Shown piece by piece: positions 2,386-49,927 of a stretch of DNA of 64,000 nt. Position 1 is the stretch's first letter; each line of letters begins with the position of its first letter. The position numbers and the translations under genes were made by a program. Source of the stretch: Adineta vaga (Eukaryota; Animalia; Rotifera); the NCBI GenBank assembly GCA_021613535.1, contig CP075497.1, positions 2,046,001 through 2,110,000 of the forward strand, read 5' to 3'. The notes under the pieces are model-generated. The model saw only the letters and a program-made list of their open reading frames with translations, was not told the origin of the DNA and made no database searches.

Positions 2386-4826
2386 TTATTGAATACGACC
2401 ATGAGTAAAATTTCGCAAACTTTGATTTAAACTAGCTAATGTTATCGGTGGTAAACGAACAGTGGATGATAGTGCTGATGTCATAGGAGACGTAGTTTGC
2501 GTATGTATAATCGAAGATTGACTTCGAGAAAGAAATTGTTTTGTGAATGCTAATCCATTCGTAATACAAGCACTCAAAGCTGAGCGATACAAATTCATAT
2601 CTGCTATGTCATACCTAGTTGAAATAATGAATACAAGATGTTATCAACATTGAAGGCATTACCATTCATCTGTTGTCTCATCAAAACATTCGACATTGGA
2701 TATTGTTGTTGAACCATTGAATCCACCAATTGTAAATAGAAGATCATCAAGAATCTATAATTCATTTTTATTCATATCACACATATTTCACATCAATTCA
2801 TAAATTACTTCAATAGCAAAATTACTTCTTGGATGAAACATATCTGGAATTGATCGCCACGAATTCATTGTTGGATTATATCGTTCACCTGTACTAAGTC
2901 GTGATGTACCATCGAAACCTCCAATTGCATAAATTGAACCATGATAAGCAATAACACCTTTTATAAAACAAAATTTAAACGAAAAAACACATCACATAGA
3001 AAGAACTAACCAACACCACTTCGACAACTATGCATCGGTTGAATCATTGTCCATTGATTTGTTATTGGATTGTAATATTCAGCTGTTTGTAAACATTCAT
3101 GTCCATCAAAACCACCACAAATATAAACACGATCTACAAAAAATATTTCATAACAAAACAATAAAATAAATGTCGATCGGTTTACCATTTAATGTACATG
3201 CTGATGCATCACTTCGTTGTACATACATTGGACAAATTGCTGACCATTGATTTGTTTCGAAAAAATATTTTTCTGCTGTATTTTGTCGAACATGTCCATT
3301 AAAACCACCCATTGCATATAGTAAACCATTTAAATAAGCAACACTAACATAACAACGTCGTTCATTCATTGGTGCTATTTCATTCCATACTCGATTGATT
3401 AAATGAAATGAACGACATGAATTAAAACATTCTGTACCATCGAAACCTCCAATAACATACATTTTATTATCAACTGTTAGACATCCATGATATGCACGTG
3501 GTGAAACTAAATTGTATCATATTTAAAAACAAAAACATACGATTAGAGGAAGAATATCACCTGGATGTGTTGAAATAATTGTCCATTTATCTGCTCGAAC
3601 ATCATAAGCTTCGAGTATATTTGTTGCATTTCCTCCAGACCATCCACCAAATGCCAAAATCATTTCATGTGGATGTCGTGGACGAATAAAAGGAAAATCA
3701 ATATCTACATCCTAAATACAATAGATTATTAATATCGACGTAAAATTAATTTCATTGGATTCATTACCATTAAACCTTCATTATCTAATTTATATAATAA
3801 TCGAAGTGTTTCTCCAAGAATTGATTTACATTGATCATTATCTTTAATATAGGGATGTTGTTTGACTTTATTAATAAATATTGATGATGGAATTAATCCA
3901 AGACGTACATGACTTATCAATTGTGCAATAAACTATTCAATTAAAATAGATATCATTTCAAAATCAATCAATAACAAACTATTTTTCGTTGTTTTATATC
4001 ATAATCAATCCATTGGATACATGCATCAAAAAGATTTTCTTCATTTCGTACATTTAGATCATCATTAGCAAGAAATTCTACGAATTGTTCAATTGAAAGT
4101 TCAACAAAAGTTTTAGTTGTTTTGATTATTTTAATAAAGTTTTGCCTAAAAAAAATGCTACTTGATTTTTGTTTTGTTTTATTATATGAATGTTTTTCTT
4201 ACATTAAATATTCATAAGTTGCATTGAAAAATTTCGAATCACTATGAATTTTTGCAAAGTTAAATAAACGAAAAATATTTTCATCATTGATATTTAACAT
4301 CAAATATTCACAACAATACTGAAATAAACTTGTCATTTGACATAATTTAGCTGCATCAATTATTCGATTAACATTATCTAATGTTAATTTACATCGACGT
4401 ATATAAGCATAATCCAGTAAACATTCCAGAGTATCACAATTTATATCTAATTCTAAATATGGATCTTCATTCTGTTGTAGATTTGTAAATGCCATACGAA
4501 GATATGGACTAGAAGCTTTTCATACAAAATTTTTGTTTTATCGATCGAGAAGAAGGCATGATAATCAATAACATACCAGCTAGGATAAATCGATGAACGG
4601 GATATTCGATACATTGTTCAGTACGATGATTTTTAATTGAAATTTTTGCATCACACAAAAGATTCGCTTTTCTTAGTTCATTCAAGATTTGACATGCTTC
4701 AGTTGTGAATGCACAAGTACGTTTTTTATCACCTGAATGTGCATTGGAATTTGTCATTTTAGACGATGAAGTTTTTCTTCGATCGTCAGGACAAAATGAA
4801 CTTTTAGATCGTACTCGTTTTAGCAT
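2386..4826 (-). CDS. KLHL10: kelch-like protein 10 (BTB-BACK-Kelch), about 10 exons
   Basis: BTB (LCDAKI..VHRFILA), BACK, then GGWSGGNATNILEAYDVRADKW, RRCYVSV, QRSDASA, RSNFAIE and YRSALS, all characteristic of KLHL10. Confidence 0.85.
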
Positions 4827-45191: not shown

Positions 45192-46449
45192 CTACATACA
45201 CATATTTCACAGTGACAATCGTCCTCACTATTCTATGTCTTGTCCTTTCTCTCGATACTTATTATGCTTCAATCATCGAATACCTTTCTGTCTGCATATC
45301 TAATGAAAGTGTGTCTATGCAATATAAGAAGAAAAAAAAAGACGCATAACATATAGGAAAGAACAGAAATGTTATATATATATATATATATACACTAACA
45401 TTGACAAGCAATCGTTTTTAAAAAAAAATGGTGCAAATAGTAAATGAGACAAATCTATACTTCGAATTTTTCTTTCTGTATTCTCGTTATTTTGCCTATT
45501 ACCAATGAGTCTTATTCAAATTTTTTTCTCGCCTTTCGTTTTCTTCTGCTTGTCGAACGCTTATATAGGTTACTAGTTATTTGGTTTGTATCATTAATAT
45601 TCATCAACAAAAAAAAAGAAAAAAAGAAAGAAGAGAAAATAAGAATAACACATTGATTTTCCCATCGGGAATTATATAACTATAAATGCAATGGTAAAAT
45701 CATCAAAACTAGAACTAATACGTTTTTCTTTCTCTTTCCCTAGTTGTAATATATCAGTTCTCCGACATAGAAAACAATTCTCTTCTTTTCTGATGACAAA
45801 ATTCCATGACATTCGTATTGCGTTGTATTAACTGCTCAAAATGTCATTATCTTGTTGATGAAAATATAAATAACGAAAGAGACCATATACAAAAGAATAT
45901 TACAGATCAACTATGCCAAATGATTAATAACATGTGCTATGTGGGTGTGAAGATTGCTCTTAAGTAAATAAACAATCAAGATATCAAGATGAGGTTGTAT
46001 CAATCGAATATATCATTTGAACTAATAATATATTTACTACATGAATCGAGTGATATCAATAGAAAACTACATGACATAACAGAAAAACAATTGTTACGCA
46101 TATCAATCATGTTTATCAATATAAAATTCTTATTAACTATGGATATTAAACTTCTAACATATGTGTATAGTATGTTCCCTTTTTTTTCGAAGAGAAATGA
46201 TGAATATTAATCGTTAAAAGGTAAACAAGTGACTGTAGATGCACTTTGATTTGCTAACTCGTGTTTTTCTCTCTTTCATAAATCGAACGATCAATCAATC
46301 AAAGACACATCACAAAATGCGAACTGTCAAATAAATCGAAATATTCGTTAAGGTTTGTATAGAAATGAGACAATGAATAATCATACATATGATTTATTTC
46401 AATAACAAATATACATACATGTAGAAAGAAAAATAATATCTATTGAGAG

Positions 46450-47929
46450 CTATTTTGACTTTTTAATTAAATTAATTTGATTTTTTTCAATAAAATTTAT
46501 TACACTATCAAGATATGATTCACTATTTTTATTGGGTCGATTTCCCGGCCACGTCTGAAGTGTAAAATCTGAACCATAATATGAAAAATATTCATGCTCA
46601 GGAATGTCATCATCAAGTTTCTTATTCATACATAAACCAGTTATTGAGGTCCATAATCGTGCTGTATCAGCTATATTATAACCTCCACCACCTAAGATCA
46701 AAAGTGGTTTATTCAATTGAATAATTTGTTCAAGACATGTTAAAATCGATGGAATTGTTAAATTAAATGATTTCATTGGATCATCAAATAATGTATCAGC
46801 ACCACATTGAATAACAAATACTTCCGGTTGAAAGGATGAATTAATCTGTGGTAATAATCGAGAAAATATTGATACATATTGTTTATCATCAATTCCATGA
46901 TGTAATGGAACATTGATATTAAAACCACGTCCCCATGTTTCACCAATTTCTTCCAGACTACCGGAATTAATTGGAAAAAAGCCAAATTCATATTTATGTA
47001 GAGAAACAGTTAATACTTTTGAAGAGCAATAAAAAGCTTCTTGAAGACCTATAAAAGAAAAAACAACAACAATATGAAAATTATAAATATAAATCAAGTC
47101 AATAAAACGAAACCGTAGACAACTAATAAATATTAGATTAATAAAACACAATCAGAGAGTCATATTGACAAATAAAAAAAGAGAACATATTTAGAAATTC
47201 TATCTCTAATTGGATTTACATTGAAAGAGAAATTCGAAATAAAAGATGACCTTGAAAAACAACATTTCTATCAAAGAATAATGCATACCATCACCATGAT
47301 GTAAATCAAGATCAATATAACAAATTCGATTGAATCGTTTTCGAAGTTCATTGATTGCCATGACAATATCATTGATGTAACAAAATCCTGATGCTTCTGA
47401 TCGTTCTAAAATCTCTTTGTTTTCTTGGGTTTTTTTTCTAATCAAAATTTACATACTTGCATGATGCCATCCACCAAAAAAGTTTATTGCAATATTATTA
47501 TTCGTAGGTGTGAGATATTTTGCAGCTGTAATCGATGCTCCTCCAACTAATTGACCTAAAAAATGATTTTCGTTTGAAAAAAAAAGAAAAGTTCAATGAA
47601 ATTTTCTACGAACAAAAGGTAACTAAATCTTCAAATGGTGGACATTCATAACCAATTTTATAAAAATCCATTTGTTCATTATAGGTTTGATCATGATCAA
47701 GATCAATATTGGCAATTAGATTTAAAAATTCTAAATAATCTCGATCATGTGCTGATGCAAGTTCATTCTCTGTTGCCAATTCTGGTTGAATAAGATGAAA
47801 AGATTTATCTTTATCAAGTTCATAAGCTTGAATCAATCCATCAACAAGATATGAACGATGACGAATTTTGTCAATATTATCAAGAGCTTTATGTAAATCT
47901 TTTGATGTTATATAAAAAACGTCTCTCAT
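46450..47929 (-). CDS. HDAC8: histone deacetylase 8 (class I), 4 exons
   Basis: [69 protein letters not shown]. Confidence 0.9.
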
Positions 47930-47935
47930 TATATC

Positions 47936-49509
47936 TTAAAAGAATAACCAATAAATAATAAATGTTAAAATCAAACAAAAAATAAGTGTTAACAAAAAAC
48001 TTGAAGTTAAATTGCCATTTTGAGGAGGAGTGACTAATAAGTTTTTCACATGTTCATCTAATTTTTTAGCAAACGAAGTAAATGAAAAGTTGTTCTTCAC
48101 ACGTTCTTCACCATGTTTACCCATTTGTTTCGATAAATTCTCATTCTCAACAAATTCTTTCATTCGTTTAGCAAATGTTTCCACGAAAGGTTCTCTACAT
48201 AAATAACCGGTTTGACCATCTACAACTGTTTCCAATGGGCCACCGGTCGCGGTCGCTATAACTGGTCGACCAGCTTGCATTGCTTCAAGTGGAACAATAC
48301 CGAAATGTTCATTAAGTGGAGTATATAGAATACAATGAGCTTTCGAAAGATATTCACGTTTTTCTTTATCAGAAAATGATCGAACAAATGTTATGGATGA
48401 TGAAGAAAGATTTAAATCTTTTGCTAATTCTTGAAGTTCATTGTAATATTCGACATTTTCACTTAAACGTTCATCATAACCGCCGATGATATATAAATGA
48501 ATCGGTTTCGAGTTTGATGAAAGTAATGTTTGAAGATGCGAGAAGGCATGAATGGCAAGACCTAAATCTTTTTTTCGTTCAAAACGATTGATTGAAAGAA
48601 AATTTATTGATTTTTCACTGTCATTTGATAATAATGGAATTATTTGATCAGGTATCGTTGGATAAAGTATATGTACGGGAATGTCTGATCGAATATGTTC
48701 TCGAAATACGGATTCAGTATAACGACTATTTACTAATATACGATCAGCAAGACATGTTGTATAGATCTAAATAGAAAAAGAAACATTTATATGGCGAATT
48801 CATTTGAATTCGATATCTTATTAGTATTTCTAATGGACTCTATCTGACCCTTGAGCATTTCTGACAATTATTGATTAAATTAAAGAGAAAAGAACTTCAA
48901 GAGACAGAAAACTAAATGGATTATTTCTCATACACGCGATTCATCAGTCTAATCGAATTAGCAAAACTATTTCGAAGAGAAAGATAGAATTACATAGTGA
49001 TCAAAATAAGCGTGTGAAATAATCACTAAATATTCTTTCAAAATCAATAAGGACATGCTTACTTCAAATGTATCTATCGGCCAACGATAGAATTTCTTCG
49101 CTAATGATTCTCGTTTTGTTAATAAATGATCAGGATAATGACAATAGAATAAAACTGGTCGTTGACTTCGTTTTAAAACTGGTATACACGCACTTATTTG
49201 ATCACATAGAAACAGATCATATTGTTTGTCTTTTTTCATATAAACAACATAAAAAGCAAGAAGAATAAATCGTAGATAAGCACATAAAGCATTGAATCTT
49301 CCAAAGATATTTCTCGGAAACCATGAACATGCAACAAAAACATTCAATTGATCATTTCGAGTTTCATCAAAACATCTTCGTTTATCATGAAAATTTGTAT
49401 AAAGATCTACATCATATCCTGATGTTTTCAATGCTAATCCTATATCAACAATTAATCGTTCCGCTCCGCCAATACCTAAATCTGGATGAAGAATCGCAAT
49501 ACGTGGCAT
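47936..49509 (-). CDS. ALG2: alpha-1,3/1,6-mannosyltransferase ALG2, 425 aa; exons 49509-49063, 48766-47936
   Basis: HPDLGIGGAERL, FYCHYPD, SINRFERKK, GGYDERLSENVEY, EHFGIVPLEAM, GGPLETV; hydrophobic C-terminal tail. Confidence 0.93.
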
Positions 49510-49927
49510 ATCTAAAATGTGATTATTACGGATTGTTTTTTTATTCATTAATGAAATTGATTAGAAAAACCTTCTGTTTTTTTTTCAATTTGCTGAGAAA
49601 TACTTGAGATAAATGAAAAAGAGATATAGATAATAGTATAATACTGATTGATAAGGAGAAAAGAGAAGTATTTTTCGAAAGGTAGGAAAGTGATAGGCTG
49701 TTGTATGTGAAAAAAAACTGTACAAATAAATAAAATCACGTTGCGGCTAAACAAAACAACAGAAAATTGGTAGAAAAATACACCAAAAAGAGATATACAA
49801 TAGAAGGAAAGATGCAAAAAAAAACAAACAAACAAAAACATTTTATCTAAAGTATTTCATTAGGGAAAACAACAAAAAATAAGATCTGCCTAAATAAATG
49901 CATTGTAAGAATAGAATTGAAATAAGA

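Follow-up and report, generated by a model that had tools for sequence, protein, structure and literature searches.

A gap-free ALG2-HDAC8 gene pair, conserved across bdelloid rotifers, as a candidate operon resolved by spliced-leader trans-splicing

[quoted passage not shown] In Caenorhabditis elegans, operons of the SL1 type, for example mes-6/cks-1, were reportedly described by Williams, Xu and Blumenthal in 1999. The locus considered here, the gene pair ALG2 and HDAC8 of the bdelloid rotifer Adineta vaga, lies on the minus strand of a stretch of 64,000 nucleotides (nt) of contig CP075497.1 (assembly GCA_021613535.1, positions 2,046,001 to 2,110,000), called the window below. A comparable layout has been described in the sea squirt Ciona, where operons occur without intercistronic DNA and the upstream gene's 3' end coincides with the acceptor AG of the downstream gene, mostly without an AATAAA signal (Satou et al. 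2006, PMC1488885). The authors of that study suggest that each transcript may yield only one of the two mRNAs, and the same paper mentions the SL1-type operons of C. elegans.

Comparison of the rotifer locus with these systems suggests that ALG2 and HDAC8 form a two-gene operon without intercistronic DNA, resolved by SL trans-splicing and conserved across bdelloids, in which the HDAC8 acceptor is fused to the ALG2 stop codon. This reading is given a probability of roughly 0.6. It is favoured by the presence of SL RNA genes, by an acceptor that is conserved while the spacer behind it is not, and by an upstream element that is found only 5' of ALG2. With 6 nt between stop and start, there is no room for a promoter or a 3' untranslated region (UTR), and because intercistronic DNA is lacking, the layout resembles that of the Ciona operons and of the SL1-type operons of C. 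elegans. The features of the locus, in window coordinates, are as follows.

49599-49647, minus strand: conserved non-coding block with TCAGTATT (49647-49640) and TCAAGTATT (49607-49599), recognized by the motif TCA(A)GTAWT
49510-49519, minus strand: ALG2 acceptor CATTTTAG|AT, 2 bases before the ATG, candidate SL acceptor of the first cistron, recognized by conservation of TTTYAG|AT (or AC)
49063-49509, minus strand: ALG2 exon 1, 149 codons (residues 1-149 of protein P0001), followed by the donor GTAAGC
48767-49062, minus strand: ALG2 intron, 296 nt
47936-48766, minus strand: ALG2 exon 2, 276 codons plus TAA, 100% identical to residues 150-425 of P0001 (Glycos_transf_1, E = 4.6e-34)
47939-47998, minus strand: final 20 ALG2 codons, encoding the C-terminal membrane anchor (...IIYWLFF) and also a T-rich polypyrimidine tract, recognized by T content across lineages
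47934-47940, minus strand: acceptor core TTAAG|AT, predicted SL trans-splice site of HDAC8, with AAG|AT in 14 of 14 lineages
47930-47935, minus strand: spacer GATATA, 6 nt
47614-47929, minus strand: HDAC8 exon 1, with the ATG at 47929, the N-terminus MRDV.Y.TS, a phase 1 end and the donor T|GTTCGT
47613-47556, minus strand: HDAC8 intron 1, 58 nt
47457-47555, minus strand: HDAC8 exon 2 (...GGWHHA)
47456-47406, minus strand: HDAC8 intron 2, 51 nt
47289-47405, minus strand: HDAC8 exon 3 (...DLDLHHGD)
47288-47049, minus strand: HDAC8 intron 3, 240 nt
46450-47048, minus strand: HDAC8 exon 4, with the stop TAG at 46452-46450
46393-46398, minus strand: AATAAA, 52 nt past the HDAC8 stop, likely poly(A) signal for HDAC8 and for a dicistronic RNA, should one exist

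At the junction of the two genes, the minus strand reads TGG TTA TTC TTT TAA GAT ATA ATG AGA. The ALG2 TAA (47938-47936) and the HDAC8 ATG (47929-47927) are separated by the 6-nt GATATA and, in A. vaga, share a frame (WLFF*DIMRDV, frame 0). The AG at 47936-47935 uses the last A of the ALG2 TAA and is preceded by a T-rich tract, so that an unpaired motif resembling a 3' splice acceptor stands immediately upstream of the HDAC8 ATG. A preliminary description of the locus, made from the A. vaga sequence, had pointed to the stop codon, the 6-nt spacer, the in-frame ATG and the AG overlapping the stop, and all of these were seen on the minus strand. The ALG2 acceptor that it named, CATTTTAG|AT-ATG, is likewise present (AG 49513-49512, ATG 49509), as is the sequence GAAG|GTTTTT at 49570, which it had proposed as a splice donor.

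The identities given to the two genes in that description also hold, according to protein matches and domains. ALG2 has two exons encoding 425 amino acids, carries GT4/GT1 domains and corresponds to the annotated A. vaga protein P0001, to which exon 2 is 100% and exon 1 97% identical, the exon 1 alignment extending into the intron. HDAC8 has four exons, a Hist_deacetyl domain and the catalytic motifs, including GGGGYN; its length is 376 amino acids by arithmetic, and it shares about 70% identity with HDAC8 of Rotaria socialis (P0124). Exons were compared one by one, and full-length comparisons relied on these two database proteins. The two genes are functionally unrelated housekeeping genes, and each is present as a single copy in the A. 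vaga assembly (100.8 megabases in 6 contigs, G000, in which the window is C6:2046001-2110000), where a comparison of homoeologs was attempted. At 296 and 240 nt, respectively, the ALG2 intron and HDAC8 intron 3 are far longer than the nearby introns of 51-58 nt.

In the proposed mechanism, transcription would start upstream of ALG2 and yield a primary transcript covering both genes. The 23-nt rotifer SL would be trans-spliced to the AG at 47936-47935, giving an HDAC8 mRNA composed of the SL, ATATA and AUG, in which ATATA would be the gene-specific 5' UTR left after the cut at the AG. The expected junction would join the 3' end of the SL (...CTTACCAAGAG) to ATATAATGAGAGAC (on the HDAC8 side also ATATAATGAGA) at 47935|47934, and the T-rich codons of the ALG2 membrane-anchor tail would act as the polypyrimidine tract. 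The SL is probably added to ALG2 as well, at TTTTAG|AT 2 bases before the ALG2 ATG (junction 49512|49511). The 3' end of ALG2 would be formed either at the acceptor or directly beside it, in which case the 3' UTR would measure about 1 nt (...TTCTTTTAAG(A)n), or further on, with the ALG2 mRNA running into HDAC8. With either mode of 3'-end formation, one primary transcript would probably give only one of the two mRNAs.

The arrangement itself is widespread among bdelloids. HDAC8 comes directly after ALG2, on the same strand, in all 14 lineages compared, namely A. vaga, Rotaria sp. Silwood2, R. socialis (five assemblies) and eleven metagenomic or Logan contigs, which were found through a protein index, look-ups of the encoding contigs and one metagenome scan. 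Among these lineages, ALG2 identity is 62-88% (sampled) and the GC content of the locus ranges from 25 to 46%. The HDAC8 N-terminus MRDV.Y.TS is conserved and its ATG has the same position in all of them. Wherever the flank is long enough, the order of a Cast-like gene, ALG2, HDAC8 and an LSDAT/TRPM2-like gene is preserved; the part from Cast to HDAC8 is shared by Adineta, two Rotaria species and metagenomic bdelloids, with about 0.5-1.1 kilobases (kb) between Cast and ALG2, and about 1.5 kb past HDAC8 in Rotaria. The recurrence of both arrangement and acceptor-like motif in 14 bdelloid lineages is more than chance would give and rules out the misassembly that had been considered as an alternative. 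In Brachionus plicatilis, no ALG2 was found in the 1.5 kb of contig upstream of HDAC8; since the adjacency is not seen there, the pairing appears to have arisen within or before the bdelloids and to have been kept since then.

Tight packing of this region also affects its annotation. In one R. socialis assembly (GCA_905332285.1), the Cast-like gene and ALG2 are merged into a single model of 1281 amino acids, while the ALG2 model of Rotaria sp. Silwood2 is cut to 280 amino acids. In other words, gene finders truncate, split or fuse gene models around ALG2.

The distance between the two genes is not conserved. From the ALG2 stop to the HDAC8 ATG, the gaps measure 1, 3, 6, 14, 16, 18, 19, 21, 22, 25, 31, 43, 56 and 57 nt, and the spacers, mostly A-rich, cannot be aligned and vary in length and frame. 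Against this background, all 14 lineages retain a T-rich (pyrimidine-rich) run with AAG|AT behind it, even at loci of 40-46% GC. As to the comparison among rotifers for which the preliminary description had called, the AG is thus conserved in every bdelloid lineage, whereas the spacing, at 1-57 nt, is not. In 11 of the 14 lineages, AAG|AT adjoins the ALG2 stop as TAAG|AT, TAAAG|AT or TGAAG|AT. In lineage L014, a second motif, TTGTTAAAG|AT, lies 10 nt upstream of the HDAC8 ATG.

Two departures from the common pattern are informative. In R. socialis, an in-frame ALG2 stop occurs 77 nt upstream of the motif in all five assemblies, and TTTTTAAG|ATAATTATTTAA is still kept; in lineage L041, the stop is shifted 12 nt downstream and the motif is translated as FFKIII*. 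The persistence of the motif at sites where it no longer forms a stop codon indicates that the constraint acts on the nucleotides rather than on stop codon or protein tail, as it would for a 3' splice site. The final 20 codons of ALG2 contain 64% T across lineages, compared with 21-40% in the rest of exon 2, and F is the last residue of about 25 of 30 bdelloid-type ALG2 proteins, while the C-termini of ALG2 in other animals vary. This suggests that the membrane-anchor tail doubles as a polypyrimidine tract.

These observations also bear on the idea that HDAC8 is expressed from an unspliced, capped start in the ALG2 tail, with AAG|AT being kept for another reason, such as the termination context of ALG2 or 3'-end formation. 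A G following UAA is indeed a favourable context for termination, and the use of the AG by splicing is predicted from sequence alone. On the other hand, such an explanation does not fit the survival of the motif in R. socialis and L041, where it is not a stop codon, nor the retention of the AT after the AG and of the T-tract in loci of 40-46% GC. The same TTTYAG|AT motif moreover precedes the ATG of ALG2. An unspliced start of this kind is regarded as quite improbable.

The early stop of R. socialis was observed in L019-L023 (around 3890-4000), where the in-frame stop, together with two more, precedes the membrane-anchor tail, and the tail survives in another frame. The anchor may truly have been lost in R. 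socialis, or the stop may reflect a small frameshift or intron that the annotation lacks. In L013, L028, L031, L035 and L042, the longer spacers are strongly A- and purine-rich, with runs of A9-10 and GAAAAAG repeats, directly after AAG|AT(T)A. These purine-rich spacers may relate to 3'-end formation of ALG2 or to the 5' UTR of HDAC8.

The variable spacing is equally relevant to a stable dicistronic mRNA, from which HDAC8 would be made by stop-codon readthrough, as a fusion protein, or by termination and reinitiation. In A. vaga, this option is made attractive by a stop and a start that stand in frame, 6 nt apart. Across lineages, the gaps of 1-57 nt are multiples of three in only about half of the cases, and of the six in-frame gaps tabulated, three hold additional stops. 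Both readthrough and reinitiation are contradicted by this variation in frame and spacing, so that this proposal, one of three models put forward for the locus, found no support. Reinitiation after an open reading frame of 425 codons is, in addition, inefficient in eukaryotes, and a dicistronic mRNA would leave the conserved AG unexplained. Overall, expression of HDAC8 in this way is extremely unlikely.

If the operon reading is correct, the genome should encode the SL itself. Searching the A. vaga assembly with the rotifer SL exon sequence from Table 1 of PMC3795323, followed by GT, gave 42 matches, compared with none for a reversed control. A single rotifer SL sequence was used in this search and was found in the genome. 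One of the SL RNA genes reads SL|GTAAAT, and an Rfam search with one such gene returned sub-threshold chance matches only. The copies are often arranged as divergent inverted pairs about 156 base pairs apart, and also as clusters, especially on contig 5; the sites include C1:2551158-2551338, C2:8.68-8.69 Mb, C5:9.88-9.93 and 10.91-10.93 Mb and others (L008-L011). In the genome, the SL exon begins with T (TGCTTATT...), while the published SL has G at that base.

The region upstream of ALG2 contains a corresponding acceptor. In 6 of 7 lineages, TTTYAG|AT, with AC instead of AT in R. socialis, is found 2 bases ahead of the ALG2 ATG; in L014, the distance is 23 bases. An acceptor 2 nt upstream of the ATG has, judged by its position, the geometry typical of SL acceptors. 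Further upstream, 6 of 7 lineages carry the motif TCA(A)GTAWT at a distance of 35-143 nt from the ALG2 ATG; in the lineages compared, it never occurs inside ALG2 or between ALG2 and HDAC8. Its background frequency in the window is 0.12 per kb. As a general marker of gene starts, the motif was not supported within the window. The block at 49599-49647 that carries it may act as a transcription-start or promoter element for the two genes, or possibly as a splice donor in the 5' UTR.

A non-coding block of about 90 nt upstream of ALG2 (window 49520-49650, minus strand; L019, L027, L031) is conserved between Adineta and Rotaria-like sequences, in the form CTCAAGTAWT ... TTTCTCAGCAAAT ... TAATAATCAGTTTATTTATTAATG ... 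GATTTTAGATATG. Conservation over about 90 nt is unusual for an outron or a promoter.

The same upstream region bears on a model resembling the unc-17/cha-1 locus, in which cis-splicing would connect one non-coding first exon with either of two acceptors, that of ALG2 or, past the whole of ALG2, the one at the ALG2 stop. Both acceptors are conserved, as this model demands, and TCA(A)|GTAWT contains a GT that might serve as a donor. The donor originally proposed, GAAG|GTTTTT at 49570, is nevertheless not conserved, being absent in R. socialis and leaving an intron of only 37 nt in L031, and the shared first exon suggested in the preliminary description gains no support from it. In L026, the distance from the motif to the acceptor is about 35 nt, which is too short for an intron, and an intron skipping ALG2 would span about 1.6-1.7 kb, compared with 51-296 nt for the local introns. 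Acceptors 0-2 nt from an ATG are moreover the usual SL geometry, and SLs are common on bdelloid mRNAs. A shared exon is, on these grounds, very improbable. Splicing of ALG2 exon 1 to the acceptor at the stop, which had been suggested to produce an overlapping TAATG, has no supporting conservation either.

More serious is the possibility that the two are overlapping independent genes, with an HDAC8 promoter inside ALG2, a short outron removed by SL trans-splicing at the conserved AG, and independent termination of ALG2. The conserved acceptor fits this arrangement equally well, bdelloid genomes are compact, and C. elegans offers examples of promoters located within operons. Because stop and start are 1-57 nt apart, however, each lineage would need to place the promoter within the coding part of ALG2. 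In ALG2 exon 2, synonymous constraint is not raised anywhere but in the T-rich tail. The ALG2 intron varies in size, from less than about 80 nt (the gap between exon open reading frame calls in L014, L025, L027 and L042) to about 300 nt (296 nt in A. vaga), and the conserved upstream motif stands only 5' of ALG2. Lack of synonymous constraint and the variable intron tend to speak against a conserved internal promoter, and two overlapping independent genes are considered unlikely.

Resolution of a polycistronic RNA by SL trans-splicing, which was another of the models initially put forward, is the one favoured by the comparative evidence, namely the SL RNA genes, AAG|AT in 14 lineages and the lack of room, or of a conserved element, for a separate promoter. 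How the 3' end of ALG2 would be formed is a separate matter. The A. vaga sequence contains neither AATAAA nor ATTAAA between 150 nt upstream of the ALG2 stop and about 450 nt downstream of it; the first such signal past the stop is at 47488, within HDAC8 exon 2. Across lineages, no canonical poly(A) signal was found at a conserved position near the ALG2 stop. A polypyrimidine tract before the acceptor combined with the absence of a canonical AAUAAA fits the Ciona pattern and not that of SL1-type operons.

A stronger version of the operon reading would have the cut at the HDAC8 acceptor also make the 3' end of ALG2, whose mRNA, although a nuclear transcript of an animal, would then end in ...UUUUAAG+poly(A), with a 3' UTR of about 1 nt and without a poly(A) signal. 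Each transcript would become ALG2 or HDAC8 mRNA, but not both, an arrangement that would have been held across the sampled bdelloids with the anchor codons constrained as a polypyrimidine tract. This version is tentative and, taken as a whole, rather doubtful. The idea that the two products may exclude each other, raised when the locus was first described, does agree, by analogy, with the proposal made for Ciona operons without intercistronic DNA (PMC1488885).

Several points weigh against an SL-resolved operon. Operons have not been reported in rotifers (Wenzel et al. 2021, PMC7986045), and no later literature report of them was found. When public metagenome contigs were scanned for the 3' end of the SL, followed by 0-30 nt and a degenerate HDAC8 start, 0 matches were obtained, which is a weak negative, and no full-length bdelloid HDAC8 transcript contig was present among the transcript contigs reached through the protein index. 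An ALG2 transcript contig from another bdelloid (L012) is spliced and ends 10 nt past the stop, without a clear SL. Additionally, the sequence by itself is compatible with an internal promoter in the coding part of ALG2.

The 5' end of the same transcript contig, a Logan RNA contig (L012:1-35), consists of an Illumina adapter remnant joined directly to GAGATTTTCAA-ATG, and its 5' GAG... resembles genomic sequence in L014. The direct joining of adapter and GAGATTTTCAA implies that this precise base, 11 nt upstream of the ALG2 ATG, was the end of several fragments. It may mark a genuine 5' end of the RNA or an SL that has been truncated (...GAG).

If the operon reading is true, rotifers would be added to tunicates and nematodes among the lineages that have operons without DNA between the cistrons, which bears on the question of whether such operons evolve repeatedly once an SL exists. 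In any case, the conserved, gap-free ALG2-HDAC8 pair provides a concrete and easily testable locus for the question of rotifer operons.

The described systems resemble this locus to different degrees. The unc-17/cha-1 locus (VAChT/ChAT) likewise yields two proteins from one transcription unit, with the upstream gene within what would be the first intron of the downstream gene. It differs in having a shared, cis-spliced 5' exon and functionally linked genes, whereas ALG2 and HDAC8 are unrelated and the donor first proposed for such an exon is not conserved. Oikopleura dioica and the SL2-type operons of C. elegans share with the proposed rotifer operon the resolution of polycistronic transcription by an SL and the conservation of operons among relatives. 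In contrast, their intercistronic regions measure 23-30 nt or about 100 nt and their poly(A) sites are distinct (PMC1488885). SL2 is also specific to operons in C. elegans, while in the rotifer one SL sequence was searched for and found.

The SL1-type operons of C. elegans come nearer in layout, in that intercistronic DNA is absent and a long polypyrimidine tract directly precedes the trans-splice site; the use of the general SL and the competition of 3'-end formation with trans-splicing would be further likenesses. They carry a canonical AAUAAA a few bases upstream (PMC1488885), which is not found near the ALG2 stop, and in the rotifer pair the polypyrimidine tract is coding sequence. In Ciona intestinalis, as in ALG2-HDAC8, unrelated genes on the same strand are directly juxtaposed, the trans-splice AG, a predicted one in the rotifer, marks the boundary and a canonical AATAAA is mostly lacking; one SL type serving both monocistronic and operon genes is counted as another likeness to the rotifer pair. 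Ciona belongs to a different phylum, and the rotifer pair is known here from genome sequence rather than from RNA ends. The upstream gene of a Ciona operon has a normal 3' UTR before the AG, whereas the ALG2 stop overlaps the AG, so that, with a cut of the Ciona kind, the remaining 3' UTR would measure about 1 nt. The layout is otherwise known from sea squirts and worms and is unpublished for rotifers, and its novel aspect is probably an acceptor that overlaps a stop codon together with coding sequence that serves as the polypyrimidine tract.

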